Source: Basidiobolus meristosporus CBS 931.73 (taxonomy: Eukaryota; Fungi; Basidiobolomycota). Taken from it: a stretch of DNA of 64,000 nt. Positions 44,754 to 64,000 of this stretch are shown here, piece after piece. The notes under the pieces were generated by a model that saw nothing but the letters and a program-made list of their open reading frames with translations, did no database searches and had not been told where the DNA came from. Numbering within the stretch: the stretch's first letter is position 1; each line of letters opens with the position of its first letter. Location: assembly GCA_002104905.1 (NCBI GenBank), contig MCFE01000168.1, positions 1 through 64,000 on the forward strand. The letters are read 5' to 3'. The translations under genes and the position numbers were made by a program.

Positions 44754-45852
44754 ATGCACACCAACAACCTATTAGATATTCAACTAGAGACCGATACATT
44801 AATATTCAATGGGTCCCCTTCTGACTCGGCAGGAGCATTGCTGAAGGGCAAAGTTATCTTGCGATTAAAGGAAGCCACGAAGCTGCGATCGCTAACACTA
44901 AATCTCAAGGGAAGGGCCAAAACTACATGGACTGAATGTAAGTTTCTTTATGATCTGTTCGTTGCCGTATCAAAAGCTTACATAATTCCCAGCATACGGA
45001 ACAAAAGCATTTGCCAACTACGCCAAGAGAAAGCTGGTCGATCACAGCTGGATCCTACTTGAACCCAAAAAAGAAGGATACCAGTTTATGGCCGGAGAGT
45101 ATACGTACATGTTTGAGTATGTTTTCTCCGGTTCCTTACCAGAGACCATCCATATTGACAGCGGAAAAGTCGAATACAAACTTCAAGCTTCTGCTGAAAG
45201 GAGCTTTCTTCAAAGAAATTTGTCCACTGAAAAAGAGATTATCATCAAGCGGTACACTAATTGCCAGAGCAATGAATCAACCGATCTTGTCGGCATCTGG
45301 GAAGGCAAGGTTCGCTACGAAGTCCACGTGCCAGTGAAGTGCTTTGGCCTCGGGGAGTCTGTCCCGATCAGCATCAATGTAGCCTCTTTGGTAGAGCAGG
45401 CCCACATCAAGAGGGTTGTTTGTTTTCTGAAAGAGTCTATTACCAATCGCATACCGGAAATCAACAAGTTCAACGTCGATCACAATTGGTTACGTCTTTG
45501 TTCAGAAAAGCTCACCCCAACCAGTCACCTTGAGACTACACTCCAGCTGCAGATCCCAAATAATTCCAAGTCTGTGCACATCGACTATCGCTCGGAGCTG
45601 ATTCGAATTCGACACATCCTCCAGGTCAAGATTGAGGTGGAGAAGGCGAATCTTGTCGATTATGTGATTCTTGATTTGCCGATATATATTCTTCCCGCGG
45701 CTCATGATGACTTCTTTCAGGATTTGCCTTCATATTCTCCTCAATACCTCGAGCACTTCGCTCTTGATGAATATGAAAATAGCCCTCCACCATACCCAGC
45801 TCAAGATACCTTCACAAATTCTGTTAGATACAACGTTCAGTGCTCTCGTTAA
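44754..45852 (+). CDS. Alpha-arrestin (ART-type Rsp5 adaptor), one intron
   Basis: LIFNGSPSDSAGALLKGKVILRL, AGEYTYMFEYVFSGSLPETI, GKVEYKLQA, IRIRHILQVKI; C-terminal PY motifs LPSY and PPPY. Confidence 0.88.
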
Positions 45853-46016: not shown

Positions 46017-49000
46017 CTAGTAGCCAGAGTCGTTATCATCGGTTTCGTCACTGTTTGCATACGCCGATTTGGCAGGAGCATATTTGTCGAGTGTCAAGAG
46101 TTTGTCGTCGATGTCGTCAGAAAGATCGTTAACATCCGAGTCATATGAATATTTCTTGGAGCTGTTAATTACTCGTTTGAAGTCGTCATTTCCGGGATAC
46201 CAGTAGTCATCATGGTAGTCGTATCCATCATGTAAATCATTATAGGATCTACTGTTACCGTAAGTGTTGCCATACCAATTGCTATCATGACCGGAATATG
46301 AGTTGCCATTGAAGTAGTCACCAGAGTCCTGCCCGTTCCAGGACTTTCGCCTTTGCAATGTGCGAGTGTTCTTGCCACGGTAGCCAGAATACATCTCGTA
46401 TCCATCCATATTTGATCCTACCAATATCTCTTTCTGGTTGAACACACCTTTAAGGTCTAGAATGGCCTTATCACATTGTATTATTGACTCTCTAATGGAT
46501 GCAAGCTCTTTTGCGAATCTTCGCGAGTCAGTAGCACCTAGTAGCTCCAGTCGTCTAACGGATTCGTTCAGGCTAGGAATCACGTTCAATAGGAACGCCA
46601 CCTTTGTACGTTGCTCTTCATTTAGCGAGAGTAGTTTGGCTGTACCCTCTGCTTGGATTTCGGCAAGTCGGACCATGATCTGGTCAAGGTGTACCACGCG
46701 CTGTCTCAAGTCCTTGAAATCATTGGAGTGATTGGGGAAGATCAGATCAGGTCTGGTGACGATCTTTTCCAAGACTTTAGTGATTTGATTTAGCCTGGAC
46801 TTGATTTCCCTGTTCTCCCTGGACTGCTGGCGTGAAGCCAGTTCAAATCGGTTGATGAGTGAATTGGCGTCGGTTCCGGCAATTCGCTGCAGTGCAAATC
46901 CAATTTGATCCAGACGATCATCCATGTGCTTGAAGCCTTGATCATTTTGCTTAGAAAGTTCGGTAAATCCTCTTTCGATTAACGAAGTCTGCTCAGTGCT
47001 TAAGCGTCTCGTCAGTTGAGCCAGGTCATTGATGAACCCAGAGACACGCGAGATTGCACCAACAATCTTTTCGTTACTAAGTGTTTGGCGTTTTATATGG
47101 GTCAGGATGATGTCTTGCTCCTGAACGAGATGTGTCATTAAGCTACCCAGTTGGTTGATGCGTTGTTCAAAGTGGGTGATGATTTCTTGGTCATACTGCT
47201 TCGTCTCCACTCGCAACTGGTTGATCTCTCTGTGGAGCAAGGTTTGGTGTTGGCTGATGATATTGGTGACTGCTTCCTTCAGTTGTCCCAAGCGACCATT
47301 CATCTCAGAGAATTCGGCGTGATCGTGTTGCTTAGTGTAGACAAGCAGTTGCTGTTGCTGGGACACGAGCTTTGCAATAACTCCGTTTAAGTTTTCAAGC
47401 GCACCACCCATTTTGTTGATGGCCATGGACTGCTTTTCGACTATACCTGCCAGGCGCATTACGGCATGTTGTTGGTTGATAAGCTGTTTTAGCGCATTCC
47501 CGAACAAGTTCAGCTTTTGATCCAGCTTGGCGAATTGTTCGCGCTGCTCATTTCGACTCAACGTGAACAACTTTCTCTGTTCGTTTAGCAAAAATTCAAC
47601 CACCTCTTCAATTCTCAAAACCTTCGAGCCCAACGCTGCGATCTCTTGACTGTGCTTATTGGAGTTCTGGGTTTCCACTGTCAAGAGTTGGTTTTGTTGG
47701 CGTGTGAGCTGACTCACTAATCTTGCAATTTCCGAGAGTTTGACATTCATATCTTTGGAGAGGACATGTTGCTGTTGATTCAAGGAGCCTAGGCCTTCAC
47801 TTGTGGACTTGAATAGTAACGCATGCTGCTCGATCAATCTGTTGGTTGCGTCGCTAAGATGTGCCAATCTGGCCTTAACCTGGTTCATATCTTGAGGTAA
47901 TCCCAGCAATGTAGAAACCTTTGCATCGATGTTTCGAGTTTCCTTAACCAAAAATTGGACCGCATCATCCAAGTGAATCAGGTTGTTATTCAACTTTTCG
48001 ACACCGCTGAATGTTGCTTTTGTGATTTCTGTATTTTCTTTCTCGATGGCAATAAGGCTTCTTTGCTCCTCAAACAGGCGATCCACCACTTGAGCTAGTC
48101 GTGTTAGCTTCTCGGTAAGGAATCGGGTCGAATCAACGATTTTCTCATCTAGACGGTTTCCTTGTTTTACCAACAGCTCGCTAAATGCTTGCTGTTTTTG
48201 TACAACAAACTGGATACCTTTCTCCAAATCGACCAGGCGGGACAATACTGCATCGATTTGCGCACGAGAGTAGCCGGATTTTTCAAGTTTCTGTAGAATA
48301 GCACCCAAGAGGGAGCGTTGCTGGCTTATCAGAGAGTCAACACTCTTACGAAGATGCTCAACTCTAGTGTCAACGCCGTGAATAGCACCAGATTGCTGAC
48401 GTAAAATTGCAAGTAGCTCCTCACGATTTAGGAGGTTGTCTTGTTTTTGGGCAATATATTTTGCGATGTCATAGAGGTCTGCAGAGCGTTGAGAGATCAG
48501 GTTCAGTCTTTCCAAAATCTGCTTACTGGGGAACTCTTGATGCCCATGGCCCAGAATCTCCTTTTGAATTTCAAATAGTCTTCCGATTCCAGAGTTCATG
48601 ATATCGAATTGTCTATTCAACGACATAATCTGCCCCAGTAACGCTTTCGGAGCCTTTGTCACTACAGTTTCTGACAGTAAAGTGGTCTGCTTCGAAATAA
48701 GTTGACGGACATTACGACTAAACACGTTGAAACCATCGATAATTTGCTTGCTGATGTCGGTGCCAACGCCATACACTTTTTCCACCATTTGTGTAATAGC
48801 GTCCTGTTGGCGGAGCAATACATCAAGTCTTTCATTCACGCCAGACAAATTATGCTTGATGGGTCCCAAATCCCTTAGTCTCTCGGCGATTACTTTCAGA
48901 ACTTGCTCGTCGCGCAGAATATTCTTTTGCTGCTCGAAAATGGCGCGCACCAATCCATGTAAAGCCTGCAGCTGCTGGTTTAGGCCATTGACACTCTTCC

Positions 49001-52000
49001 CAAAGTTGACATTTAGCTGCCCTTGGCTTTGGAGAATCATATTTTGCTCTTTTTGTATACGCTTCATATCATCTCCTAAACCAGAAACGCGACCGCCAAC
49101 CGCTCGGATTGCTTCATAGAGGTTTCTGGCCACGGCATTCAATAGTTCCGGTCGTACAAGGTCTTTCTGCTGCTCTATCAATACTTGTAGCATCTTGTGG
49201 AGATCGCCCAATGTTCCAAAAATCTTTCTGTCATCAAGATTGTTTTCCCGTACAAATCTCTGGAACTCTTTGGTGGTGACCAAAGTTCGCTGATTTTCCA
49301 AGATATGCCCAACCAGCTCGCCCATCTGTGATAATCGACCATCAACCCTTTGGAATTCGCCGTAGAATTTCTCAAGGATTGGCCCGACCTTCTCGTTATG
49401 TAGGATGGCTTGTTGAAGCTCCAAAATATGTCGAACAGATCCGCTTAGTTGATTGAATCTCTCGGATATGATTTGGACATTCTTGGCCAAATCTCCGGTG
49501 ATCTCGTTGTTTTTACTCTGACTATTGAGGAGGACTGCTTGTAGTTTTCTTATTTCTCTAACAGCCTCGGTCAAACCTCGAACTTGTCCGTTCAGAACCT
49601 CGATGTCTTGGACGACGCGTTTGGGGAATTGATTGACCAGTTGAGAATTGGCGAGTAGCTGTTGTTGCTTGAAAAGTTGGTCCACCACACTAGTAAGGTA
49701 CCTGATGTTACCTCCGATTTTTTCTAAGTTTGCGGCTTCGCCTTGATGAATTCCATAGCCTTGTTCCAGCAACTTTTGCTGCTGGTTGATCAACAGGGAG
49801 ATTTCCTTGCGAACTGTGTTGATGTCTAATCCCAGACCTCTTATCTGCTTTGACTGATTACTCAGCAAAGCTACTACCCGATCATCATGGATCAACCTTG
49901 TCTGGACACTTGCGATCTCTTGAAGTGCATTACCAAACTTGCCAATACGTTCGTTAAGAATATTCAACATTTGGCGAACTGATGAGTATTCCTTGTCCTG
50001 TTTCTCAGCAATCGCACGTTGTTGTTGGCTAAGGTCTCCAACATCACCAGTCAATCGAATGATTTTTCCTGAAAGGTCACGAACTATATCAGCCAAGGCA
50101 CGAGGTAGCGAGCCAATTATCTCCGGAAGATTGAGCGACTGTTGCCAATGCAATACACTTGCAACCACGTTTTGGAGCTGCTTAACCCGGTTCAGGATTT
50201 CGCTTAGACCTTTTCTATCGACATCTTCCAAGGTTAGCAATCTCTCAAGTAGTCTAGATTGCTTGGAAAGGAATTCGGTGGTGCGAGCGGCAAAGTTCGC
50301 TAAACGGCCATTGATGTTCTGAATATAACTTAGCTGTTGATCGAGTGCGGCCTTGACTTCTTTGTTTTGGGAAATGATAATATTCTGCTCTTCCCGAATT
50401 TGCCTGACCTCCTTTAGAAGTTCAACAATTCCATGGGATACATCACTGACGCCTTCCCGAATTACGGTGGTTTCCCGTTTTTCAGCTGAAGTCAATTTGA
50501 GCAGTGATTCCTGGCGATTGACCAATACAGAAATGGCTGGCTCGAACTTCTCCAGGCGAGCATTGATTCTATGCACTTGTGAGAGGATTTCTTTGGGAAT
50601 TATTTTGTAAATATCAGAGTTCAACACAATTTGTTGAATATTTACTATTCCTTCAGACAGCTCTTTCAGTTCCGCTAGTCTCTTGATGACATCAGTGTCT
50701 CTAGCTTGAGATCCTTCATTCCCATTCTGAGTCTCACGCAGCAAAGTGTTCTGAATCTCTACAATGCGAACGATGCCATCTCTGAATCGTGCAAGTTGTT
50801 GCTTGATCAATTGAATGTCGCCAGTTTGCACTTTCAAGATCTCCATCACTTCTTCCTTGTGAAGCAGAGCATTCTGTTCCTCCGCAATGCGCTTGACCCA
50901 TTCGGCTACTTGGGCAAATTGACTACGTATTTGGGCCAATTGGCGTTCAACTTGCTTGTAATTTCCTCCTTCGCTTAGAACCTTGAGGATTAGAGATTGT
51001 CCGTCTCGTACATTTCGAATAGTAGTTCCAAGTTGAACCATACGATCGTTTAGATTGGCAATGATCTTGAAAATTTCTTTCCCAACTCTTGAGGCGATTT
51101 CTGGACCTGCAAGGCTCTTCTGTGAATCAACCAAGTGCCTTACAACATCACGCAGCGATCCGAGTTCTTGCGCAATTGCCCGATCACGTTTAGTATCCTC
51201 TGCAGAAACTTCGCCAAGCTGTTTTATGATCAATCCTTGTTCATTGACCATTCTGTTGAATTGATTTCCCAGTTCATTGAGCTGCACCCCAAGGCTGGCA
51301 ATGCGTTGATTCTGTACCTTGAGTAAAGCAGTAATCTCTCTGGTATTCAACACCTTTGTTTGTTCCGCAAAGGTTCGTCGAATAAATTCAAACAGCCCTA
51401 GTAAACGCTTGTTCAATTCTGAAACCTCCTCCTCCAAGTGATGACCTGTTGCATTGCTATCCTGGGATAATTGGAAGAGTGCGTTTTGCTTTGTTGTAAT
51501 CTGGTTGATGATTTCGATCAGCTGGGCATATTTATCATTGAGCATTTCTATCTTGCCAAGAGTAGACTCGGATAATTTGCCAGTTAGTGATGCTGAAACC
51601 AATTTTCTCTGCTGTTCAATTAGCTGAACAATCAAGTTCTGGAGTCCGCTTAGCCCTTGAAGAATACTTCTAGTTTCCTTAGAATCTACCCCGTTTTCTC
51701 CGGTAACTTTTTTCAATAGATCAAATTGAATACGCACAAGGGTCTCTATCTTCTTGTCGAGTCTTCGCACCTGCTCATTCAAAAGGTCCGTTTTCCCCAA
51801 GTTCTGTTTGAGAAGTTCAGTGTTGTGGAGTAGTATTGCTTTTTGCTCAGCATGAAGCTCCTTGACATAAGACCCAAGTTCACCTAGCCTTGCCCCTAGT
51901 TTATCGATACTGTTGATAATTAACCCAGTATCCTCCTTGGATTGAGCAAATAGTTTCTCCTGTAGCTCTTGGACCTGATTAACATCCTTATTCAAGCCGA

Positions 52001-55000
52001 TTAGTTTGTTATTGAGTCGCACTATTTCAGCCGGAATCCTTTTTCCCAACGCTTCGTTGAAGTTTCGTGAGAGGATATTAGTCTGTTGACTTGTCAGCTC
52101 GTAAATTGTTTTGCGTAATTCCGCTAGGTTTTGAGCGATTTCTCCTAATTTGCCGTAGTCTATTCTCCCGTCTTTGGAAAATACAGCAATGAGTTTCTGT
52201 TGCTGTCCAACCAAGGATTCTACTTTACGGTCTAATACGTGCAGCCCAGCTTTGATCTCTTCAAGATTCTTGGCCTGTTCAGGTGTAAGGCCGCCGCGTT
52301 TGAGGATCTCCAGTTGGAACTGTGCAACTTTCTCAACCATCTGGGACAACCCCGAAAGACCCTTCTTTACCTCATCTATATCTTTGACAATATACTTAGT
52401 ATCGCCATCCTGCTGCTGAATGAGATGGTCTTGCTTTTTGGAGATTTGGACAACCGCTTGGCCCAATTGCTTAAGTTGCAAGTGCAAGGCCTCAATATCT
52501 TTCAAAAGTTCCTTCGGTGCCTTGTCCCATCCGCTTTGAAGCAGGATATTCTGCTGTACTAGCACCTTCCGGATACTCTCACTAATCTTGGTTAGCACAT
52601 CTCTCAGAATGTTCAACTCTCCGCTATCCCCTTTCCCCTGGCCCAAGAGGTACTTCTGCTGGTTGAGGAGTTGGACGATGTGATTGCTGATTTCCGCTAA
52701 TTCCAAAGATAGGTTCTTGATATCGCCACCTTGTTTCTTGAAAAGAGCAGCGATCTCTTCACGAGTTACCAAGTGTCTTTGGGTTCCAATTACCTGGGTA
52801 ACCATATCGTAAAGTTTGTTCATTTGGTCGCCAAATACTCGAAGTTCTTTACCATGATTCCTTATCATGGCACTATTCTCTTGTGTAAAGCCTAGTAGTT
52901 TGTTTTGTTGATCCAGTAAGCCTCGGACATATTTTGTTAGTTGGTTCATTCCGTCATCAAGTTTCGAGAGCTCTGCTACTATCTCCTTAGAACCAACTCC
53001 CTTATTTTCGGAAATATGGTAAACAAGCTTGCGTTGTTCATTTATCATAAGCTCAATTGACTTTCTTAATTCCGATAGTTTAGCTCCCGAAATGCCAAAG
53101 AGTTTTTCGACATCGCTGCCATATTTCTCCAAAATCTCTCTTTGCTGAGCTGTCAACTGGTTTATATCCTTTCCAAGCGTGTTCAAGCGCTGGTTGACAA
53201 TATTGAAATTTCTGTCCTGGGATCGTGAGAGCTGCACCGTTAGTTTCAATAAAGAGTCCTGCTTTTTTGAAACTTCCAGAGTTGCTGTGGCCAGCCTTTC
53301 TATCTTGACGTCAATTTGTTTTGTATCACTAGCAATGTTTTTTGTAGTCTCGCCGATCTGAGAAAGTGCGGACTTCACTTCCATAAGAACAGTTTGGGTG
53401 GCTTCAGTTAATAGGCCAATTCTCTTGCTCATCTCTCGGATGCCTTCGATCCCCTTAATAGAGGTGCCACTTTGAAGGTAACGAAGGATTTCTTTTTGGC
53501 TATTAAACATTTTCTCGATGTCTCCATAGATTTTTGATAATCTTTGGGCGGTACCCTTCGCGTATTCCAAGGTTTCTTTGTCGGTGATGGAATTCTCTTT
53601 CTCAAGAGATGTCAATTCTTGGAGAAGCTTTCTCAAATTACCCATTTGACGGTTTATCCTTTTGATATCGGCTGCTTCTTCTTGAATTATTGGAGCAAGC
53701 TCTACCAGTTTGAGGGTGTAGCTCTGTTGCGTATTCAAGATCCTCACAATCTCATCGAGTTTTTCAAGCCTATTGAGAAATTTCCCCAGAGCCATATTTG
53801 TATTGCCCTTGTTTGAAACGCTTAAGAGAGCAATTTGATCCGAAGCTAGTCTCTTGACAAGAGCAGTTAGTTGATCTACTCTTTCTGCCAGCTTCTCTTC
53901 ATTCTCAAGAACTTTCTGTGAAGTACTCTCTTTGGCAACAACTTCAAGTAGTTTCCCTTGGCCGGAATAAAGCGAACTGATTGCTTGTTGGATATTGCTG
54001 AGTCGTTCGCCAAGTTTCAATAAATCGCCTTGGGAGGAGTTTTCAGCATTTTTGAGCGATTTTTCCTGGAGCTCTATCATTTGTGTCGTTTTTTCTCTCA
54101 GAACGCTCAGCTGCTCGTTTAGTTTCTTGATATCTCCTGAGTAGCTCGGCCCGTTGTAATTTCCATTAGACAAACGTCTCTGTTCCTTGAGCACAAGGGC
54201 TATGACATCGCTCAGCTGTGAAAGTTTGCCGTTAATCTTTTTGATATCTTGAGATTGGCCATTTTCGTTCATCAGAATCTGTTGCTGGTCAACTGCAACT
54301 TTCTCTATGATCTGGAGAATCTTCGAGGTCAGCTCCTCGAGTCTATCGACATCTCTATCATACTTCCCTTCATCATTTTTTGGATAGGTACGTCGTTCCT
54401 TGGAGATGCTTTGGATTGATTTACCTAGTCTATCAAGTATACCCCGGAGACTGCTGAATTCCTCACTTTGCTCCTTACTGAGTCGTGAAAAGATAGATTC
54501 CTGTTGCTGGAGTACGAGATCAACTCTTTCACGAAGCTTGGCGAGTCTACTATCCAGACCACCTAGGTTCCATTTCGCAGAGCCCGCGTCAATATTCACT
54601 GGCTTGCCATCAAGCAAATATTTCTGTTGCTTGGCAATCAGTTCTACAACTTCCACCAGCTGCTTCACTCGTGAGTTGAGACCGTTGATAGACTCAGTGA
54701 CACTTTCATCTGTAGAATGTTGATCCTTTCCGGAGCCATATCGCTTTATCAACTCTCTTTGCTCCTTAATCAGTCGGTCCACAATGTTGCTAATATCGGC
54801 GAGTCGGTAATTGATGCTTCCAATATCCTTTGTCAGTTCCTTCGGGATGGTAGCTGTTCGATATTGTTTAAGTAGAGTCTGCTGAGACTCAACCAGCGTC
54901 TGGATTATGGCTCGAAGCCTATCTAATGAGCTCGCTACTTTCCCATTCCCATCTTTAGGATAGTCGTCTCCTGCCTTCATATCCTTGTAATTGAACACCT

Positions 55001-57023
55001 TGGCTTGCTCCTCAATCAGGTAGTTGATTCTCTTTCCAAGATCATCCAATTTACCATCCATTTTCGTAATTAAAGTATATTGTTGCTGAAGCCAGGAATT
55101 GTGTTCTGAAAGTGGCGACAAAAGTTTGTCAAACTTGATCAGCTTTTCATTGAATGCTGACCATTTTTCTTCTCCATATGGCGCTTTCGACTTGATCAAT
55201 GCTGCTTGTTCTTTAAACAGACTCTGGACCACGCTCTTAAGAGTCATAATCGCTCGTGTCATGCCCTTGACATCTCGAAGGAATTCAACTGGTACACCAC
55301 TAGAGTGGTGACCTTCTAAAATCTTTTGTTGGCCATCTACAAGACCTTCACATTTGTCTTCAATACGATGGAGTAGATCAACGATCTCGGTTGACCCCGA
55401 ACTTTCGTTTTTCTCGCTGGAAGTCTCCTTGACATACCCGACTTGTTGTGATACGATCTTGTTGATCGATTCTCTGAGCAACTTGAATTCAGAAAAGATG
55501 GCCTGAATGTTCTTGCCATCCAAGTAGTGATTTCCACCTGAACCTTGCTCACTGGTTAGGGTTGTCTCTCTCTGGACCAAGGAGGCCAGTGAAGAGTTGA
55601 CCTCATTCAGCCGGAGACCAAGACCATTAATATCCTGGAAAATACGCTTGTTGACTTCAGTTTTGGCGGAACCATCATTGCGGATCCCTTCAGCGACAGT
55701 ATTCAGAGTTTCAACCAGTTGACCAATTCTTTCAGAAAGAGCCTTGAAGTTGATGCTTTGATTTTCTCTAACCTCCGATATAAGCTGGATCTCTTTCCTT
55801 TCAGCCGCACGAGATTGCTGGATACTGCCCTGTAGGAGTTGCTTAACCTGATCAAGTTCTTCTTTCAGGCGAACGATACTCGTGTTGTCTTCTTTGGATA
55901 GTTTTGAGACCTTACTAACAACATCGCTAACCTCCCTTGTAATAAGGTTAAGTCCTGATTGTAGCCCACTAAGGTTGTGGCGTATCTCCTTAAGCTCATG
56001 GTCATGTGCAGTATCGCTTTTCTCCGAATTAGTGTACCCGGAATCAATTTTATATGATCCTTCTTTACCAAGTTGGCCGACTGCACGAAGCAGCTCGGTC
56101 AGTCTAGTGTTGATCTCGGCAACATCTTTGGATGATTTTACGATAGCAATACGTTGTTCCTGAGTATTTTGCTGCTGAACGTCCGAAAGCTCAGAAACAT
56201 CACGTCTAAGCTGTTGTAGCTTGTCGTTTAATGCGCCCACTTCGTTGAAGGTCTTGGTGCTAATCGAATATGTCTTTGAAGTCTGCTCTTCAATGACTTT
56301 GTTTTGTTCAGAGATCCCACCCACCGTGCGAATAAGCTCCTCCACCTTTCCAGATAATACCGATAATTCCTTATTCGATCCGCCACCAAAGTTATAACGC
56401 TCTTTAGTGATCCCCTTGTGTCCTACGGCCGCTTCCTGAATTAAACGATCTAATTTTTCTTCAAGCCTGCTGAGGTCCCAACCAGAAGATTGGTCCTGCT
56501 TATGGAATGACAATCCCTTGCCAGCATTTCGTTCATCGATCTCCACTTCATTATCATATTCGAAATCTTCCACCAAGCTGCCGATGCCATAACCACCCTC
56601 ATACCAATCCTGAATTCCTCCTAGGAATCTCAATTGATTATCGGGAAACAGAATAATTTGCTCTTCTGGAACCTCCGTGAGATACACCTCCTCTATCACG
56701 TTGATTGGTTGTGGCGCAATAAGTCTGATGGAGTCACTATTTTGGAACACTCTGGTAACTCCATGCGCTCCTTTTTCTAGAGACTCTTCAGCATCTTCCT
56801 CAGATTCCTCCTGTTCTTTCACCGAAAGAATACTACTGTTGCCGTCATTCTTCTTTCTCAGGTATACTGAAGAGTCGTCACCACCGCCAGTATGCTTTGA
56901 TAACTCTTCACCCAGTATAGTATTGCTCAGAGCGAGTTGGCTGAATAGAAACAAGGCTGTACGCCAGTTCTTACTGGCGTTAGAGTGACGGAATTGGCTA
57001 CGTAAAATAGTGTTGGATAGCAT
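46017..57023 (-). CDS. Giant intronless 3668-aa coiled-coil repeat protein, probably secreted; function unknown
   Basis: 11-kb open frame. Possible signal segment WRTALFLFSQLALSNTILG, acidic head, several dozen heptad blocks ending L/I-x-x-x-Q-x-x-L-L, Tyr/Asp/Gly-rich tail. Confidence 0.9.
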   Translation of the reverse strand: MLSNTILRSQFRHSNASKNWRTALFLFSQLALSNTILGEELSKHTGGGDDSSVYLRKKNDGNSSILSVKEQEESEEDAEESLEKGAHGVTRVFQNSDSIRLIAPQPINVIEEVYLTEVPEEQIILFPDNQLRFLGGIQDWYEGGYGIGSLVEDFEYDNEVEIDERNAGKGLSFHKQDQSSGWDLSRLEEKLDRLIQEAAVGHKGITKERYNFGGGSNKELSVLSGKVEELIRTVGGISEQNKVIEEQTSKTYSISTKTFNEVGALNDKLQQLRRDVSELSDVQQQNTQEQRIAIVKSSKDVAEINTRLTELLRAVGQLGKEGSYKIDSGYTNSEKSDTAHDHELKEIRHNLSGLQSGLNLITREVSDVVSKVSKLSKEDNTSIVRLKEELDQVKQLLQGSIQQSRAAERKEIQLISEVRENQSINFKALSERIGQLVETLNTVAEGIRNDGSAKTEVNKRIFQDINGLGLRLNEVNSSLASLVQRETTLTSEQGSGGNHYLDGKNIQAIFSEFKLLRESINKIVSQQVGYVKETSSEKNESSGSTEIVDLLHRIEDKCEGLVDGQQKILEGHHSSGVPVEFLRDVKGMTRAIMTLKSVVQSLFKEQAALIKSKAPYGEEKWSAFNEKLIKFDKLLSPLSEHNSWLQQQYTLITKMDGKLDDLGKRINYLIEEQAKVFNYKDMKAGDDYPKDGNGKVASSLDRLRAIIQTLVESQQTLLKQYRTATIPKELTKDIGSINYRLADISNIVDRLIKEQRELIKRYGSGKDQHSTDESVTESINGLNSRVKQLVEVVELIAKQQKYLLDGKPVNIDAGSAKWNLGGLDSRLAKLRERVDLVLQQQESIFSRLSKEQSEEFSSLRGILDRLGKSIQSISKERRTYPKNDEGKYDRDVDRLEELTSKILQIIEKVAVDQQQILMNENGQSQDIKKINGKLSQLSDVIALVLKEQRRLSNGNYNGPSYSGDIKKLNEQLSVLREKTTQMIELQEKSLKNAENSSQGDLLKLGERLSNIQQAISSLYSGQGKLLEVVAKESTSQKVLENEEKLAERVDQLTALVKRLASDQIALLSVSNKGNTNMALGKFLNRLEKLDEIVRILNTQQSYTLKLVELAPIIQEEAADIKRINRQMGNLRKLLQELTSLEKENSITDKETLEYAKGTAQRLSKIYGDIEKMFNSQKEILRYLQSGTSIKGIEGIREMSKRIGLLTEATQTVLMEVKSALSQIGETTKNIASDTKQIDVKIERLATATLEVSKKQDSLLKLTVQLSRSQDRNFNIVNQRLNTLGKDINQLTAQQREILEKYGSDVEKLFGISGAKLSELRKSIELMINEQRKLVYHISENKGVGSKEIVAELSKLDDGMNQLTKYVRGLLDQQNKLLGFTQENSAMIRNHGKELRVFGDQMNKLYDMVTQVIGTQRHLVTREEIAALFKKQGGDIKNLSLELAEISNHIVQLLNQQKYLLGQGKGDSGELNILRDVLTKISESIRKVLVQQNILLQSGWDKAPKELLKDIEALHLQLKQLGQAVVQISKKQDHLIQQQDGDTKYIVKDIDEVKKGLSGLSQMVEKVAQFQLEILKRGGLTPEQAKNLEEIKAGLHVLDRKVESLVGQQQKLIAVFSKDGRIDYGKLGEIAQNLAELRKTIYELTSQQTNILSRNFNEALGKRIPAEIVRLNNKLIGLNKDVNQVQELQEKLFAQSKEDTGLIINSIDKLGARLGELGSYVKELHAEQKAILLHNTELLKQNLGKTDLLNEQVRRLDKKIETLVRIQFDLLKKVTGENGVDSKETRSILQGLSGLQNLIVQLIEQQRKLVSASLTGKLSESTLGKIEMLNDKYAQLIEIINQITTKQNALFQLSQDSNATGHHLEEEVSELNKRLLGLFEFIRRTFAEQTKVLNTREITALLKVQNQRIASLGVQLNELGNQFNRMVNEQGLIIKQLGEVSAEDTKRDRAIAQELGSLRDVVRHLVDSQKSLAGPEIASRVGKEIFKIIANLNDRMVQLGTTIRNVRDGQSLILKVLSEGGNYKQVERQLAQIRSQFAQVAEWVKRIAEEQNALLHKEEVMEILKVQTGDIQLIKQQLARFRDGIVRIVEIQNTLLRETQNGNEGSQARDTDVIKRLAELKELSEGIVNIQQIVLNSDIYKIIPKEILSQVHRINARLEKFEPAISVLVNRQESLLKLTSAEKRETTVIREGVSDVSHGIVELLKEVRQIREEQNIIISQNKEVKAALDQQLSYIQNINGRLANFAARTTEFLSKQSRLLERLLTLEDVDRKGLSEILNRVKQLQNVVASVLHWQQSLNLPEIIGSLPRALADIVRDLSGKIIRLTGDVGDLSQQQRAIAEKQDKEYSSVRQMLNILNERIGKFGNALQEIASVQTRLIHDDRVVALLSNQSKQIRGLGLDINTVRKEISLLINQQQKLLEQGYGIHQGEAANLEKIGGNIRYLTSVVDQLFKQQQLLANSQLVNQFPKRVVQDIEVLNGQVRGLTEAVREIRKLQAVLLNSQSKNNEITGDLAKNVQIISERFNQLSGSVRHILELQQAILHNEKVGPILEKFYGEFQRVDGRLSQMGELVGHILENQRTLVTTKEFQRFVRENNLDDRKIFGTLGDLHKMLQVLIEQQKDLVRPELLNAVARNLYEAIRAVGGRVSGLGDDMKRIQKEQNMILQSQGQLNVNFGKSVNGLNQQLQALHGLVRAIFEQQKNILRDEQVLKVIAERLRDLGPIKHNLSGVNERLDVLLRQQDAITQMVEKVYGVGTDISKQIIDGFNVFSRNVRQLISKQTTLLSETVVTKAPKALLGQIMSLNRQFDIMNSGIGRLFEIQKEILGHGHQEFPSKQILERLNLISQRSADLYDIAKYIAQKQDNLLNREELLAILRQQSGAIHGVDTRVEHLRKSVDSLISQQRSLLGAILQKLEKSGYSRAQIDAVLSRLVDLEKGIQFVVQKQQAFSELLVKQGNRLDEKIVDSTRFLTEKLTRLAQVVDRLFEEQRSLIAIEKENTEITKATFSGVEKLNNNLIHLDDAVQFLVKETRNIDAKVSTLLGLPQDMNQVKARLAHLSDATNRLIEQHALLFKSTSEGLGSLNQQQHVLSKDMNVKLSEIARLVSQLTRQQNQLLTVETQNSNKHSQEIAALGSKVLRIEEVVEFLLNEQRKLFTLSRNEQREQFAKLDQKLNLFGNALKQLINQQHAVMRLAGIVEKQSMAINKMGGALENLNGVIAKLVSQQQQLLVYTKQHDHAEFSEMNGRLGQLKEAVTNIISQHQTLLHREINQLRVETKQYDQEIITHFEQRINQLGSLMTHLVQEQDIILTHIKRQTLSNEKIVGAISRVSGFINDLAQLTRRLSTEQTSLIERGFTELSKQNDQGFKHMDDRLDQIGFALQRIAGTDANSLINRFELASRQQSRENREIKSRLNQITKVLEKIVTRPDLIFPNHSNDFKDLRQRVVHLDQIMVRLAEIQAEGTAKLLSLNEEQRTKVAFLLNVIPSLNESVRRLELLGATDSRRFAKELASIRESIIQCDKAILDLKGVFNQKEILVGSNMDGYEMYSGYRGKNTRTLQRRKSWNGQDSGDYFNGNSYSGHDSNWYGNTYGNSRSYNDLHDGYDYHDDYWYPGNDDFKRVINSSKKYSYDSDVNDLSDDIDDKLLTLDKYAPAKSAYANSDETDDNDSGY

Positions 57024-57283
57024 TACAACGAGCGAGGTTACAAGAATGTGTCAAGAAAAACCGAAATTACTTTCAAGGTCTATTAAAAAAAGGAATGCTA
57101 CGATAATTAAGAATAGTCGGCAAAAGCAAAGGACTCGGAAGTTAAGTTCAAAATTGGTGGGTCCTAGAAGTAAGGTTTTCTCTATACCACCTTAGTAGAA
57201 AAGTATGTTTTAATATAACCCCAAGAGTGACGAAGAAAATTTCTACGCTTGTATGATAGCTAGCTGTGTCTCCCGAGCGAGGC

Positions 57284-57291
57284 TATTTATA
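57284..57291 (-). promoter_or_regulatory. TATA box (TATAAATA on minus strand) for the 3668-aa gene
   Basis: tatttata on the plus strand, ~260 bp upstream of the ATG at 57023. Confidence 0.45.
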
Positions 57292-57962
57292 CCACATGTA
57301 CAACATTTATTCCCTAAGGATATAGCAATCCTCACAAGGAACATGAAACTTGACAGCCAGGATTTCCTCTAACGTGACGAAGATCCACGGTGTTGAATTC
57401 AACTGTTTTTGAAGTACCATCCGGCCTCGATTGTTTCAGATAATTCGGCGAGAACATATGATGTATTAGCATAGATCTTAGAGCCCACCGATTTCAATGA
57501 ATTCCAAACCAAGTGGCCTGTGGATGCTGTGATATCGATTGGTAATGCGGTGGTCTTGTTGCCTGGTTATTGATGTTAAATTGGACGCACAACCACACTA
57601 TTGTCGGGATGAAATGATCCTAAAGTAAACGATATCTTCATCTTTTGCTAATGTGTGTAAAGCAGCCATCTTCCTTGTTTCAAGGACGAAATGTTTAGAC
57701 GTATGTAACCTTATGTACAAAGGGATCAGAATTGTCTTACACATGCACTTGCGGTTTCTGGATTGTTTTCTAGTAGATATCCATAAGCATTCAACCAGAA
57801 TTAAAGCTGGCACATTGATTGCAGGTGCATATATATATGCCATTCATCGTTGCTGCTATTTTGGTTTCTCTTTAAAAACACTCAGATGGTCCACTGTTCA
57901 TCTATCCTGCAGTGAGATGCTGAATAAACACTGTTACTCTATCAACATGAGCAACTGCATTT

Positions 57963-57969
57963 TATAAAT
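57963..57969 (+). promoter_or_regulatory. TATA-like element (TATAAAT) for the paralogous giant gene
   Basis: About 110 bp upstream of the ATG at 58078. Confidence 0.45.
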
Positions 57970-58077
57970 GCGAGTAGTCATGTGTTGATCCATTAAACCT
58001 TTAATCGCGATATCTATTTGTGTATCCATTTCTATCTTCTCAGGATATTCCACACTGTTTACGTTCGGCTAGTAATT

Positions 58078-61000
58078 ATGACCCATCAAAATGGGATGAA
58101 TACTTTCAAGAGACTGCGTTGCAATTTTTACTTACTATCGCAGTTAGCTGTGGTACAATCCATTCAAGGCTCCATATACCATCACCCGACTAACAATTCA
58201 TTCGTGTCTAATGAATTCGCGCTTCATACAAACTCGAGTAATAGAGCTAACTTGTTAAGCAATATACACCTACGAAGTCAAACACGCTCTACAGATCCCC
58301 TTGACAATTGGAATACTGTCAATTTAGGGCTGGACCCATCGGGTATCGAGCTCTCACCCTATTTAGAGTCTGGGGACTATCCACTATCAGAATATGTTCA
58401 GGCGTTCTCTTGGAAAAATCCAGGCGAGCAGGTCCTACTCTTTCCGGACGGTCAACTGAGATATGTGAAATCAGCTCTACATCCCTACTCTTCTGTTGAG
58501 TCGGATAAGACGAACGTTAGGACTAGCTTGCCAAAAGATCACGGAGCGAACAAAGATGATGGGATTGCCACAAAAGAAGAATCTCTAATGTTGGATGTGA
58601 AATTGGATCAACTCATCCTGGCTTTGTCACCAGCTTTACTACACGAAAGACACCATTCCGGCATTCATTTTCAAGGGTTGCATGAAGATATAACCCAACT
58701 GAAACAAAACGTAGAGAAGCTGGAGAATGCAATCGGGATAACATCGACATCAAATCAATCGAATCAAGCCCATACTCAACTTTATGAGAAACTGAATGGC
58801 CGTAACCATAACTTCGTCGGCGCTCAAAATAATACCGATAGTCTTGAGCAGCTTCGAGATGCGTTCAGCGACATGATAATGGAGCAACAAATTTTACCTA
58901 GGGGGATAGGCGACGTTACGCCAACTGAGCTTAAGAAGATAATCGAAGACTTAACAAGTCTGTTCTCTCGTACTCACAGAATATTAGTAGAGATTGGCAA
59001 TGAAAAAGATATATTCCTTCGCAAAGACTACTCAGAAATGAAAAATTTTCAAGGAATTAACAAGCTGTCGAAACTGAAGGATATATTGGACCTGATAATG
59101 AAACTACGGGACCGCATCTTGGGGGAAGATTTTCATCAAAAACTCAGGAATTACTCGGGAGATATTAGTAAGCTTGGGGAGCAATTTATTAAATTGAAAT
59201 CTACCATGGATCTATTGGTATTGCAGCAACAATGGACATCAAAAGGAGTGAGGGCCAGCCAGCTGACTAATGATCAAGCTACTAAGCAATTAGATGAATT
59301 GTATATGGTGGCTGATCGAATAATGCAGGATCAAGAGAAGCTATTTTCCATCAAAACCAGTGGCAAGGAAGATTTAGTACTGGAAAAAGCTATTCATAAT
59401 TCTCTTAAACAGTTTGCAAAACTGACCATCGTGGTTGAGAGATTAATTGAACCGAGTGGACTTGTAAAACCCCACGGAGATCCCGGAAGTGCTAAGGTTG
59501 TTGAGAGTAGATTAACAATCATTACTCCGAAGCTTGATCTACTGAGAGATGCCATGATACAGATGAATAAGCAGCAAAATATCCTCTTGGATATCTCTAG
59601 ATATCACCAACGGATGGAATCGCAATCCCAAGATATTCGAAGACTTGAAGAACAATTGGATAGGATCCAATCAACTATGCTTGCCTTGGAGAAGAACGGA
59701 CCTCAACACCAACGAGCAAAGTTTGTTAAGGCTCATCTAGAGCAATTTAATAATCTCTTTCAAAAGGCACAACGGCTGGTGAGAGGACAATATCAGTTAC
59801 TATCACTTGTGAAATCCAATAGGTCTGAAAAACGCTTGAATAATGTCGAAACCATGAATCTGAAGCTCTATCTGCTGAACAAAATTATCGAGCAAGTCAT
59901 CAGCAATGAAAGGCCTTTGGTAAATTCAGTTAACTCTAAAGGCAGGAACATGGCGAGCAGGATTTTACAGGTCGATATCAAGATTGGCAAGCTTAATACA
60001 GCAGCTATAGAAATATCTAGACGTCAAGAGCAACTATCGGAATCTCTCAACGTCTCTTGGGGAGAACAAGATAACAACTTCAAGCTTATGAGCTATATAC
60101 TGAATAATCTGGGTTCAGGCATCAATAGATTAGTCACACAACAGCAACGACTTCTCAACGATAAGGGGTATACAAATGAACCAGCAATTAACGGAAAATT
60201 GTTGGAACTGGAGAAATCTGTGAATCGTTTGGTTGATGCACAAAGCAAATTGCTCCTTATCAAGCCAGCCAAACTCTCAGGAGAATTGATGCAAGAAATT
60301 GATTCAATGGGCGAACGTGTCAAAGAGCTCGCCAAACTCATTGAAGATTTGAATTCAAAACAAGAACAAGTTTGGAAGATCTTTAGGAATGGGAATGCAG
60401 TAAATGATTTTGAGAAGGCCCTCGCAAAGGACTTGCATAATCAATTTTTATCGCTTTCTTTTCTTGTTGATAAGTTGACTCAGAAGCAAATAGCATTTAC
60501 CACTCGAGAGGAGGTGACAAGACTTCTGAGTGTCCAAGATAAAGGAATCCAGCAACTATCGTTCGATCTTGGTCAAATTTGCAATAAGGTGGGCCAAATT
60601 TTGCGGCAACAAGAAATTCTAAATGCCAAGAATAATAGATCAAGTTCCTTGAAATTATTGTTGGATATTAGTAAGAATATCTGGCAGCTTCTGAAACAAC
60701 AAAATCTACTAGCCCGGTCCGCACATGAGAAGGATGTAGACAAGCACGCATCAAACTTGCGAAAGAAATTGGACAACCTCAAGATAATTATCAGTAAAGT
60801 ACTTTCGAGCCAAGAAAGTTTCATCCAGCCAGCATTCGCCGGCAGCGAAACTTCTTCTGTTACAAGTACTAGGGTAGGGGAGCTCGAATTGGAATTGACT
60901 GAACTAAACAATGGGCTTGATATTGCTTCCTTTGTGCAGATAGAAATTCTCAAGCAGATTGGTGTTCTCAACGATCAGCAAAACGTCAAAAGCATAAACT

Positions 61001-64000
61001 CAAAAACCTCCACTTTAGGGAAGCGAGTTGATCAGCTAGTCAAAGAGCAAAAGGCACTCATCGATAAAGAGGGCCGCAATGATAAGGTGGCTAAAGACTT
61101 CGAGGAAATTCGGAAGGTTATTTCCAAAATAGTTGAACAACAAGCTACAACTTTAAACGCTACCTGGAGGAGTATATTTGAGGAAAGAATACCATTCGAT
61201 GTATCCGTGGTCAACACCAGGATTGTAAAGCTAGGTGACATTGTAGATCAACTCCTAGTCAAGCAACGTACTCTCTTTCCCCACCATGCAAACAGTGGCT
61301 TGCACAAGAACTCAGTCAAAGGGTTGAGAAGTCTAACAATCTCAATCAGCCAGGTTGGCAAATATGCTAAGAAATTATTATCTGAGCAAACACAGATATA
61401 CCAGAATCATGAAGTCTTGAGACAATCCCTCACCAATACCAGTAAGATCGACAGCCAGCTAATCGGATTAACCAAGAAAATCGACACAGTTGTACGCATC
61501 CAAGCTGCTCTATTACGACGTGCTCGAAAATATAACTATAGGAATACTGAAAGGCTTGGTGACGATCCTATTATCCAAAAACTCTGTGGCTTACAAAGTT
61601 CTGTCAACCAAATTATTTTACGTCAACAGAAATTGACCAGGGCCAAATTAGACGGACGCATTCCAGATGAAACTCTCAAAGAATTTGGGAAACTTGACAC
61701 GCATTTCAAGGAGCTGATAGGCTCAGTGAACCAATTTTCCACCAAGCAGTGGACAGTTATTTTGAAGGACTCGAAAAGCGAATTAACTGAAGACTTGGTG
61801 AGGAATATTTACCGCCTTTCTGAAGAACTCAAAGATATTTCGAACTATGCAACGGAAACCATGAAAATTCAGTCGAGGATTTTTGGCAGTAAGGAAGTCA
61901 CCAGAATACTCCAGCTCCAATCCAGTCAAGTAAAGGACTCTGGTTTAAAGTTAGGCCAGCTAAAGTCAAAATTTCAGGATCTATTAAAGCAACAGGCAAT
62001 GGTGATCAAGGAGTTAGGATACAGCCCAGGTCTAAAGAAAAATTCAAACGATCGCTTGCAAATTATTTATGAAAAGCTTCATGGACTACGTGGCGATTTT
62101 GAAAAGGTTATTGGATATCAAAGAAGTTTTATTAACCTCAAGATTAGATACAACCTGCCGAAGGAGATATCTTTTATAGTTGAAAAATTGAATGAACGTT
62201 TTACGGCTCTAGAAAAACAAATCGTTGACTTATCTAGGGGTCAGGATAACTTCTTGAGACTTGAAAGGAAAGATGAGCAACATCTATACACCATTGAAAA
62301 TTTCGCCTCGAACACAACCAAGGAGATTGGATCCTTGAAGGAATTGATAAACCAAATTATCCTCGAGCAATCAAAACTCTTCAAGCGTAGTGATGTTACG
62401 GCCCTTCTACAGCAACACACAGCAAGTATCGAGAAGATGGATGATCGACTACAGGATCTCAGCGCTCGAGTGATTCAACTTGTCAGTAATCAAAAGGAAC
62501 TGCTGCTTGCTGGTGAAACAGACAGATCTAAAAATTCTGCAAACAAAGACCTAATTAATAGATTTACCGAATTAAGAACAACAGTTCAAACACTTGTCCA
62601 CAAGCAGAATGAGTTATCTAAGCCACAGATTTTCAACCAAATCTCAGGGGATATAGCGCATGAAATTAAGGAGCTAACTGTGCAACTATCCAAACTCAAT
62701 GAAAAGGTCACCGCATTGAACGATAAGCAGCAAGCCATTCTTCTTCAAGTAGATAGCGCTGGTAAACACAATATCAATCCTCACAGACACAACGTTCAAT
62801 ATTTGAATGAACAACTAATTGATCTGGGAAAATCAATCCATGACATCTCCAGTCATCAAGCAAGAATTGCAAACGACCACCGAGTATTGGATGCGCTAAA
62901 GAAGCAAAATACGCAAATACTCTCTTTAGAAACAGGAATGATCAATCTCCGGGGAGAATTGAGGACTTTGATCTATCGTCAACAAACTCTGCTCAATGAA
63001 ACACACAACACTATCCAGCAGAATAGTGGTGAGATTTTAGAAATCCTGGCGAAACTCCAGAACTTGGACGGTAAAACAAATGGCCTATTCGAGCAGCAAA
63101 AAGCACTGATCAATAGAGATGTTTATGCAACTATTCCTAAAGAACTTACATTCCAGATTGATCAGATCGGTACTCGAATCGAGGATCTTCAGCATTTCGT
63201 GACCAAAGTTTCCAGAGACCAGGCAACATATCTTGAGTACAAGACAAGAAACAAGAATGGTGATTCGAAGAAATTACTTCGACTCAATCAACAATTTGAT
63301 CGATTGTTAACCATCATATCTCGGATTCTTGACGACCAAAATAAGATTACTACCAACGAGCATGTAGTCAAGATACTGAAAGAACACTCCAAATCAATCC
63401 AAAAAATTGATATCAGGCTCACGGGTATAAGCACTCTAATTCGAAAAATATTAGATAACCAACTCCGATTCATTCAATCACACAACGATCATAATCATAC
63501 TAGCCGTACTGCTCAGAATTTACCGCCTATAGCTACAGCCTTGTTGAGGATTCAAGAGGAGGTTGAATATCTCATTGAACAGCAGAGGAAGCTTAATCTT
63601 CCAGCAGTTGTGAATGTTCTACCTACAAATCTTCTGGACAAAGTGGTTCAAATCAACTCAGCTTTGGACGGCTGGAACGGGTATATTCAGCGTTTGTTTG
63701 AAAAGCAAGCCGAGTTGATCAAGTCATCAGAGAGCAGACAAGCCCAGGATTATAGGCATGCAATTGACAAGATCAACGAGAATTTGAGCGATTTTGGCCA
63801 CGCAATGCATACTCTGACTGTCCAACAGACGGAAATCTTCAAGAATGAGGAAATTCTAAAGATCGTGGCTGATGAACTCGGGGATCTGAAAGCAGTCAGA
63901 GCAACCATGAGAAAATTCGGCAGTCAGATCCAGAGTGTGATCAACCAACAAAAACACATCCTGGCTAGTATCTCTAATTTATCGAATCGGGATTCAGTTG
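58078..64000 (+). CDS. Paralog of the giant coiled-coil protein, at least 1974 aa, runs off the window end (absent from the ORF track)
   Basis: In-frame stop at 57994-57996, ATGs at 58078 and 58096. Stretches I translated (58.0-59.2 kb and parts of 60.5-64 kb) had no stops, and the track lists no closed ORF in this frame. Shares SQLA, EQVLLFPDGQLRY, KKIDTVVRIQ and NEEILKIVA with the minus-strand giant. Confidence 0.9.
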   Translation, partial: MTHQNGMNTFKRLRCNFYLLSQLAVVQSIQGSIYHHPTNNSFVSNEFALHTNSSNRANLLSNIHLRSQTRSTDPLDNWNTVNLGLDPSGIELSPYLESGDYPLSEYVQAFSWKNPGEQVLLFPDGQLRYVKSALHPYSSVESDKTNVRTSLPKDHGANKDDGIATKEESLMLDVKLDQLILALSPALLHERHHSGIHFQGLHEDITQLKQNVEKLENAIGITSTSNQSNQAHTQLYEKLNGRNHNFVGAQNNTDSLEQLRDAFSDMIMEQQILPRGIGDVTPTELKKIIEDLTSLFSRTHRILVEIGNEKDIFLRKDYSEMKNFQGINKLSKLKDILDLIMKLRDRILGEDFHQKLRNYSGDISKLGEQFIKLKSTMDLLVLQQQWTSKGVRASQLTNDQATKQLDELYMVADRIMQDQEKLFSIKTSGKEDLVLEKAIHNSLKQFAKLTIVVERLIEPSGLVKPHGDPGSAKVVESRLTIITPKLDLLRDAMIQMNKQQNILLDISRYHQRMESQSQDIRRLEEQLDRIQSTMLALEKNGPQHQRAKFVKAHLEQFNNLFQKAQRLVRGQYQLLSLVKSNRSEKRLNNVETMNLKLYLLNKIIEQVISNERPLVNSVNSKGRNMASRILQVDIKIGKLNTAAIEISRRQEQLSESLNVSWGEQDNNFKLMSYILNNLGSGINRLVTQQQRLLNDKGYTNEPAINGKLLELEKSVNRLVDAQSKLLLIKPAKLSGELMQEIDSMGERVKELAKLIEDLNSKQEQVWKIFRNGNAVNDFEKALAKDLHNQFLSLSFLVDKLTQKQIAFTTREEVTRLLSVQDKGIQQLSFDLGQICNKVGQILRQQEILNAKNNRSSSLKLLLDISKNIWQLLKQQNLLARSAHEKDVDKHASNLRKKLDNLKIIISKVLSSQESFIQPAFAGSETSSVTSTRVGELELELTELNNGLDIASFVQIEILKQIGVLNDQQNVKSINSKTSTLGKRVDQLVKEQKALIDKEGRNDKVAKDFEEIRKVISKIVEQQATTLNATWRSIFEERIPFDVSVVNTRIVKLGDIVDQLLVKQRTLFPHHANSGLHKNSVKGLRSLTISISQVGKYAKKLLSEQTQIYQNHEVLRQSLTNTSKIDSQLIGLTKKIDTVVRIQAALLRRARKYNYRNTERLGDDPIIQKLCGLQSSVNQIILRQQKLTRAKLDGRIPDETLKEFGKLDTHFKELIGSVNQFSTKQWTVILKDSKSELTEDLVRNIYRLSEELKDISNYATETMKIQSRIFGSKEVTRILQLQSSQVKDSGLKLGQLKSKFQDLLKQQAMVIKELGYSPGLKKNSNDRLQIIYEKLHGLRGDFEKVIGYQRSFINLKIRYNLPKEISFIVEKLNERFTALEKQIVDLSRGQDNFLRLERKDEQHLYTIENFASNTTKEIGSLKELINQIILEQSKLFKRSDVTALLQQHTASIEKMDDRLQDLSARVIQLVSNQKELLLAGETDRSKNSANKDLINRFTELRTTVQTLVHKQNELSKPQIFNQISGDIAHEIKELTVQLSKLNEKVTALNDKQQAILLQVDSAGKHNINPHRHNVQYLNEQLIDLGKSIHDISSHQARIANDHRVLDALKKQNTQILSLETGMINLRGELRTLIYRQQTLLNETHNTIQQNSGEILEILAKLQNLDGKTNGLFEQQKALINRDVYATIPKELTFQIDQIGTRIEDLQHFVTKVSRDQATYLEYKTRNKNGDSKKLLRLNQQFDRLLTIISRILDDQNKITTNEHVVKILKEHSKSIQKIDIRLTGISTLIRKILDNQLRFIQSHNDHNHTSRTAQNLPPIATALLRIQEEVEYLIEQQRKLNLPAVVNVLPTNLLDKVVQINSALDGWNGYIQRLFEKQAELIKSSESRQAQDYRHAIDKINENLSDFGHAMHTLTVQQTEIFKNEEILKIVADELGDLKAVRATMRKFGSQIQSVINQQKHILASISNLSNRDSV

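Follow-up and report, generated by a model that had tools for sequence, protein, structure and literature searches.

The talin rod, vinculin and alpha-catenin are each built as a single chain of serial antiparallel helical bundles of ~130-170 amino acids (aa), and giant rods of tandem bundles, in which the last helix runs nearly directly into the next module, are found in spectrin, dystrophin and the nesprins. Heptads, Leu-rich cores and polar core residues are in turn the hallmarks of long coiled-coil proteins such as Mlp/Tpr, Uso1, the golgins, myosin tails and trimeric adhesin stalks. The stretch of DNA analysed here, hereafter the window, comprises 64,000 nucleotides from the fungus Basidiobolus meristosporus CBS 931.73 (contig MCFE01000168.1, positions 1 to 64,000 of the forward strand) and carries a giant gene, K493DRAFT_351315 (46017..57023, minus strand), whose product has features in common with both. 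An earlier note, made from the sequence alone, had described it as an intronless gene for an undescribed, probably secreted fibre protein that forms a parallel, perhaps trimeric, coiled coil.

In the way it would work, the protein comes closest to talin, alpha-catenin and spectrin with their rods of tandem helical bundles; it belongs to none of these families. Its structural matches included talin R11-R13, the M domain of HMP-1, vinculin and alpha-E-catenin, and the resemblance to talin, vinculin and alpha-catenin is at fold level only (Z 7-8): K493DRAFT_351315 is related to these proteins neither in sequence nor by Pfam, and it has no FERM, actin-binding or vinculin-binding element. It further differs from talin in its ~20 uniform bundles with a strict 41/162-aa period and an invariant core Gln per helix, in its putative signal peptide, and in being confined to one fungal genus. 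Spectrin repeats are 106-aa three-helix bundles (PF00435), to which no Pfam match was obtained at E<=1, whereas the modules described here are 162 aa long and are predicted to have four helices, with the chain entering and leaving at the same end. From the long coiled-coil proteins it is set apart by a longest unbroken heptad run of ~43 residues, by having no Pfam coiled-coil match and by its predicted intramolecular bundles; unlike classical coiled coils and adhesin stalks, it has neither a membrane anchor nor head domains. The same up-down-up-down topology and the same helix lengths as in the modelled modules are present in Chlamydia IncA (6e6a/6e7e; a SNARE-like four-helix bundle), but IncA has just one such domain, preceded by a bacterial membrane anchor, and no sequence match to K493DRAFT_351315. 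In the poly-HAMP arrays of bacterial chemoreceptors, helices and connectors likewise take turns, the period being ~45-50 aa, and these arrays were the first matches of the super-repeat profile outside Basidiobolus (E 2e-11 and weaker), but the matched stretches score just 4-5 bits. The HAMP kinship suggested by these weak profile matches was rejected, as hhalign returned a probability of 0.3% against 38 HAMP_2 repeats and no Pfam HAMP match was obtained.

We read K493DRAFT_351315 as the A-type member of a giant modular protein family restricted to Basidiobolus, in which a chain of ~20 helical bundles would be exported and would act together with a B-type partner as a structural rod or tether; the probability that we attach to this reading as a whole is about 55%. 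The family itself is new and genus-restricted, and is built from a familiar fold.

Results

A two-level repeat of helical units

K493DRAFT_351315 encodes a 415-kDa protein of 3668 aa with an isoelectric point of 8.3, which is rich in Leu (13%), Gln (8.5%) and Glu (8.3%), with Lys also abundant. Only two Cys occur in the translation, as the earlier note had counted. Using a unit profile that was seeded on the Q..LL motif and then iterated, ~80 units were identified from residue 177 to residue 3476, spaced 35-45 aa apart and in most cases 39-41. Each unit is composed of a 27-residue amphipathic core with the consensus IRKLNGRLAQLGKAVEQLIEQQQKLLK, followed by a linker of 12-14 residues. Across 277 units from seven family members, Gln occupies one core 'a' position in 97% of the units and is the most conserved residue of the whole family, while the a/d positions are 93-100% hydrophobic. 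In the autocorrelation of the sequence, the heptad lag of 7 ranked highest and exceeded every shuffle, and no 11-mer or 22-mer periodicity was detected. The repeated heptad blocks with a core Gln that had been noticed by eye are therefore genuine.

A second level of repetition, absent from the earlier note, is the grouping of the units by four. Unit-to-unit similarity has its maxima at lags 4, 8, 12 and 16, and four units make up one 162-aa super-repeat, of which 12 are regular and ~8 degenerate. The linkers recur in four kinds, namely a helix-like 'REE..LLK.Q..D' linker, a Gly-rich loop, a 'PKE' linker and a variable loop. Along the chain, the unit profile places ~28 less regular helical units of ~35-45 aa, which form degenerate super-repeats, at residues 177-1393 (52845..56495, minus strand); these are followed by the 12 regular super-repeats of 155-168 aa (48 units), each modelled as a four-helix bundle, at residues 1394-3323 (47055..52844, minus strand), and by a final four degenerate units at residues 3324-3476 (46596..47054, minus strand).

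A 162-aa super-repeat profile built from the 12 regular super-repeats of K493DRAFT_351315 alone (residues 1394-3323) matched the B-type gene next to it, which is ~25% identical, over its full length and in the same phase (E 1e-21 to 1e-27), which indicates that the two-level repeat is real and old. The super-repeats are ~20% identical among themselves versus 58-72% to their orthologous or paralogous counterparts, and in comparison with the B. ranarum orthologue the rod is evenly conserved throughout (50-77% identity per 81-residue window). Since each module is closer to its orthologue than to the other modules, every module appears to be individually constrained. Judged by their ~20% amino-acid identity, the repeats are apparently ancient. 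At the DNA level, no tandem repeat was detected in the giant gene by Tandem Repeats Finder, which argues that the repeat array is not an assembly artefact.

Known domains were searched for in parallel. No Pfam family scored above threshold in the whole protein, in either terminus or in the N-terminus of the B-type partner, and the Pfam scans revealed no actin-, membrane- or microtubule-binding domain. A PDB sequence search with the 3668-aa protein yielded zero matches, and the top 19-residue Kyte-Doolittle mean of 1.22 indicated no transmembrane segment in it. These searches agree with the earlier statement that the protein has no motor, ATPase, transmembrane or other recognisable domain. Nor was any homology found to golgins, Uso1, Mlp/Tpr or spindle-pole proteins, the intracellular coiled-coil proteins that had been named as the contrary case. 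The earlier description of the protein as undescribed also holds. The three B. meristosporus locus tags searched for are mentioned in no paper, and the literature on Basidiobolus secretomes or adhesive offered nothing useful.

Super-repeats are predicted to fold as four-helix bundles

The fold was modelled with AlphaFold (AF2), for which multi-bundle alignments were assembled from non-overlapping segments by repeat register. Residues 1867-2515 (12 alignment rows) were predicted to be all helical, with a predicted local distance difference test score (pLDDT) of 69 and a predicted template-modelling score (pTM) of 0.38, and with four helices of 28-43 residues in each super-repeat. The bundle phase begins at the 'REE..LLK.Q' linker, for example at residues 1894-2056, and a model of residues 1894-2218 cut in this phase (34 rows) reached a pLDDT of 79.9, with blocks to 93, and a pTM of 0.50. 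In both models, each ~160-residue module taken alone aligned to solved four-helix bundles. The best structural match was the soluble domain of Chlamydia IncA (Z 14.6 and 11.7; root-mean-square deviation 3.8 A), with 158-159 of 161-163 residues aligned at 11-14% identity, and further matches included NLR coiled-coil domains, SPECT, Borrelia surface proteins, THATCH, talin R13 and designed helical repeats. These Z-scores point to the type of fold, not to kinship. A search of the ESM Atlas by structure returned nothing above a template-modelling score of 0.33 by query, and ESM Atlas feature searches, run on a segment of the rod and on both termini, gave sub-threshold neighbours alone (0.73-0.83).

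Collectively, the models predict that each super-repeat is an intramolecular antiparallel up-down-up-down four-helix bundle and that the protein is a chain of ~20 such bundles. What makes this prediction convincing is that the four-unit periodicity of the sequence is independent of AF2. At the modelled junction between bundles, the last helix enters the first helix of the next bundle after a break of 1-2 residues, and since both ends of a four-helix bundle lie at one pole, the chain would be expected to zig-zag or to stack side by side. With ~20 bundles and helices of 4.5-6 nm, the molecule would be roughly 50-120 nm long. The core Gln lies 3-8 residues before the C-terminal end of each helix in the AF2 secondary structure, which would place the Gln of helices 1 and 3 in a layer near one pole and those of helices 2 and 4 near the other.

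Two claims of the earlier note find no support in this result. A parallel, perhaps trimeric, coiled coil is at odds with the 28-43-residue helices, the 162-aa periodicity and the antiparallel bundles modelled by AF2, and in such bundles the core Gln would be an intramolecular feature, not that of an oligomeric stalk. The proposed span of several hundred nm would likewise shrink ~4-fold, from the ~500 nm of a continuous helix to the ~50-120 nm of the modelled chain.

A family confined to Basidiobolus and arranged in divergent pairs

When 1.84 billion representatives were searched with a hidden Markov model (HMM) of the super-repeat, seven proteins were found at E<1e-30, all of them from B. meristosporus or B. 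ranarum. Below these seven there was a gap to matches of E 2e-11 and weaker, consisting of poly-HAMP chemoreceptors and generic coiled coils, whose stretches score 4-30 bits individually. A word-indexed homologue search recovered four long relatives, each of them a Basidiobolus protein. For the C-terminal 233 aa or the N-terminal 220 aa alone, it gave no homologues, in shorter proteins either. The HMM check of taxonomic range that the earlier note had suggested thus confines the family to Basidiobolus. Horizontal transfer or a viral origin was considered and rejected, as no relative exists outside Basidiobolus among these matches and the surrounding genes are ordinary fungal ones with introns.

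One match to the profile from a distant source is recorded here in its own right. A 1492-aa protein of a Candidatus Poseidoniales metagenome-assembled genome (P0011), with no Pfam family, contains one stretch that fits all 160 positions of the super-repeat profile, at 31 bits. The protein is helical, rich in Asn and Thr, and repeats itself every ~50 aa, and its resemblance is probably due to convergence.

The family falls into two clades, A and B, with support of 100/100 and an A-B identity of ~23-27%. Clade A comprises K493DRAFT_351315, P0002, P0003 and P0004, and clade B comprises the neighbouring gene at 58078 together with P0005, P0006, P0007 and P0008. Core-Gln 162-aa super-repeats, shared terminal elements and head-to-head A/B pairing were all found in the family. 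In the window, the B-type partner lies head-to-head with the A gene on the plus strand (58078..64000), and its open reading frame (ORF) continues to 66462 of MCFE01000168.1, giving a protein of 2794 aa. This ORF (58078-66462; L003:562-8946, minus strand of that locus) has no stop, is ~25% identical to the A gene and follows the same super-repeat phase. It has no public gene model; the first gene annotated past it encodes an enoyl-CoA hydratase. The two genes are separated by a divergent intergenic region of 1054 bp (57024..58077), which may serve as a promoter region for both.

Divergent A(-)/B(+) pairs are also formed by P0004 and P0005, 1.5 kb apart on MCFE01000038, and by P0003 and P0008 on B. 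ranarum JASJQH010007398. The conservation of this arrangement suggests co-regulation and a joint function of A and B. No similarity could be detected between the intergenic region in the window and its counterparts at the other two A/B loci. Between these two, a block of ~219 bp near the start of the B gene is 72% identical (L001:9599-9813 in the P0004/P0005 region versus L002:9639-9842 in the P0003/P0008 region), and it was not detectable in the window; this block is possibly a conserved promoter element or part of the 5' untranslated region.

The gene is intron-free and the public models need correction

K493DRAFT_351315 is an uninterrupted ORF of 3668 codons plus stop, with an ATG start and zero internal stops. 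An in-frame stop is located 11 codons upstream of the ATG, and the ML(S/A)N start is also present in four A-type homologues with an intact N-terminus; together these observations support the placement of the start codon. The public model (P0001) has 3645 aa, and its sole difference from the ORF is the removal of 69 nt as an in-frame GT..AG intron (48150..48218, minus strand; residues 2936-2958). These 69 nt encode 23 residues that contain a repeat core including its Gln and whose protein sequence is conserved in both the B. ranarum orthologue (P0002) and the paralogue P0004, which indicates that the intron is spurious and the gene intron-free. By comparison, the span exceeds the coding length in eight of the nine complete neighbouring gene models at the window locus and the paralogous locus, so these eight carry introns. 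The earlier description of an intronless gene in an intron-rich genome therefore holds, the lone annotated intron being conserved coding sequence.

Two irregularities were observed at the paralogous locus. In P0005 (K493DRAFT_297118; L001:10001-20752), the public model drops 54 nt as an in-frame intron and thereby loses the conserved hydrophobic segment of the N-terminus (..RKSNFRRNLFLISQLAVA..), which they encode; the ORF reads through 3583 codons with no stop. In the A-type paralogue P0004 (L001:238-8481, minus strand), read-through meets three in-frame stops at codons 146-153, which would reflect either a genuine short intron or a fault in the sequence close to the 5' end; this paralogue is ~900 aa shorter than the window gene at the N-terminal side.

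At the other end of the giant gene, an arrestin-domain gene (Arrestin_N/Arrestin_C; public model of 347 aa) converges on its 3' end, and the window ORF 45088-45852 (plus strand) is one exon of it.

Conserved termini and possible export

The first 38 residues (56910..57023, minus strand) resemble a signal peptide, and this N-terminus is conserved in all A and B members. Its n-region is basic, with four K/R and without D/E; the hydrophobic core (ALFLFSQLAL..) spans 12-15 residues, and I-L-G precedes Glu-Glu. The pattern across the family is a basic stretch, an LFL[FI]SQLA[LV].. core, small residues and an acidic region, and in the B-type proteins an A-H-A site follows the hydrophobic core. The Eisenberg hydrophobicity <H> of the core is 0.5-0.65 and its helical moment 0.05-0.2, and with so low a moment the core does not look like an amphipathic helix and resembles the h-region of a signal peptide. 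Supportively, the ESM Atlas neighbours of the first 220 aa were all small secreted acidic proteins, at a sub-threshold score of just 0.73. Because the signal-peptide-like N-terminus is kept in every family member, the earlier assignment as probably secreted stays plausible, and from these sequence features we put entry into the secretory pathway at ~55-60%.

Two further terminal elements are shared. The motif EEQIxLFPD(N/G)QLR(F/Y), at residues 118-134 (56622..56672, minus strand), is present in all seven family members, where LFPD[NG]QLR[FY] lies around residues 100-170. At the other end, residues 3477-3668 (46020..46595, minus strand) form a conserved helical stretch with the sole conserved Cys (..IIQCDKAI..), followed by a tail rich in Tyr, Gly, Asn and Asp. 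Within it, the C-terminal motif LHDGYDYHDDYWYPGNDDF at residues 3597-3615 (46179..46235, minus strand) is common to the A and B subfamilies, and a GY[DE]Y..[YF]WY motif is found near the C-terminus of all members. The tails of the A-type proteins, rich in Tyr/Gly/Asn/Asp, range from neutral to acidic, while those of the B-type proteins are Arg/Gly/Ser-rich and basic (net +14 over 128 aa in P0005), and both end in the same aromatic motif. The tail charges of A and B may thus be complementary; opposite charges would fit a tail-to-tail pairing of the two proteins, which is speculation.

Discussion

How such a protein would operate can be outlined from these features. The N-terminal basic, hydrophobic and small-x-small segment would act as a cleavable signal peptide and direct the chain into the secretory pathway. 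A and B would be expressed jointly from their shared intergenic region and act together, and the wall, the spore surface or an adhesive would contain the bundle chain as a structural rod or an extensible tether. Talin-type rods provide a plausible analogy for a force-bearing tether that can unfold. Within the chain, the buried Gln pairs might fix helix register and partner choice, so that mis-pairing among 80 look-alike helices would be avoided.

Several observations weigh against an exported chain of bundles. The AF2 models are of the monomer only and are blind to an intermolecular alternative, the pTM values of 0.38-0.50 leave the bundle-to-bundle arrangement unfixed by the models, and the structural Z-scores are within the range common among unrelated helical bundles. 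As regards export, the h-region is short and polar, with a conserved Ser-Gln, the n-region is long (13-21 aa), and the A-type N-termini, which have no acidic residue for 38 aa, are readable as a mitochondrial presequence. The content of 22% D/E/K/R with no Ser/Thr-rich or Cys-rich region would be more typical of intracellular helical proteins, and the B-type tails are Arg/Gly-rich.

Some of these same features suit an intracellular scaffold, a reading that is possible though not the one we favour. The bundle chain would then lie in the cytoplasm or nucleus, like talin, alpha-catenin or spectrin, or tether an organelle, with the N-terminal hydrophobic segment as a docking or peripheral membrane-binding element. 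The charged, Leu/Gln-rich composition without a Cys-rich or Ser/Thr-rich region and the Arg/Gly-rich tails of the B-type proteins fit this placement, talin R11-R13, HMP-1/alpha-catenin, vinculin and THATCH are among the structural matches, and the Ser-Gln in the hydrophobic core is conserved across ~25%-identical paralogues, which is unusual for a signal peptide. What speaks for export instead is that the segment is situated at the extreme N-terminus in all members, basic before and acidic after, with small residues at -3/-1, and that its hydrophobic moment is low; a scaffold would, moreover, have to work with no actin-, membrane- or microtubule-binding domain.

A parallel oligomeric (e.g. trimeric) coiled-coil fibre of several hundred nm, with the Gln as polar layers, is unlikely. 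It would account for the strong heptad periodicity and the Gln at core 'a' in 97% of units, and AlphaFold monomer runs could not have seen oligomers, but helices of 28-43 residues with Gly/Pro-containing breaks every ~41 aa are ill suited to a continuous stalk. The four-unit periodicity and the four linkers have no rationale there, yet are needed by a four-helix bundle; AF2 is confident inside the bundles (pLDDT up to 93), and no Pfam coiled-coil family matches, unlike in the true coiled-coil proteins that were scanned.

Still less probable is a behaviour like that of the exchangeable apolipoproteins, in which amphipathic helical bundles would open onto lipid droplets, the spore surface or an air-water interface. 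The ESM Atlas neighbours do include Apolipoprotein/FAM81B, baculovirus P10 and PEP families, at scores of just 0.69-0.83, but there is no Pfam Apolipoprotein or ApoLp-III match, the 11-mer and 22-mer periodicities are missing, and a core that is 93-100% hydrophobic with a fixed register suggests stable bundles. Finally, processing by Kex2 of a repeat polyprotein to ~160-aa or ~41-aa pieces after export would suit a repetitive and possibly secreted protein, and such precursors are reportedly widespread in fungi, but the 17 KR sites observed equal the 17 expected by chance and favour no unit position, making it highly improbable.

Beyond the reading of K493DRAFT_351315 as an exported, modular rod or tether that acts with its B partner, a bolder form is offered only tentatively and is itself rather doubtful. 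In it, the A and B giants would be secreted together, and their conserved termini would link them into an extracellular polymer of unfoldable four-helix bundles that bears force, with an elastic or adhesive role in a Basidiobolus-specific structure, which may be the wall of the ballistic conidiophore, the conidial surface or the capilliconidial adhesive. If true, this would be a counterpart of talin and spectrin outside the cell and a new class of eukaryotic extracellular matrix, with the Gln pairs as register locks.

Whatever its site of action, the public annotation of the family is wrong three times: a false intron was placed in K493DRAFT_351315, the signal-like segment of K493DRAFT_297118 was spliced out, and the 2794-aa partner was left unmodelled. 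Because of these three errors, automated secretome and orthology surveys would have missed or misclassified the family.

If the favoured reading is true, Basidiobolus has invented and long kept its own family of 300-415-kDa modular proteins, which combines two-level repeats, a near-invariant buried Gln per helix and a conserved two-gene arrangement. The family would be a natural system for studying how mis-pairing is avoided in tandem helical bundles and how intron-free giant repeat genes exist in an intron-rich genome, and for asking which lineage-specific structure requires such a tether.

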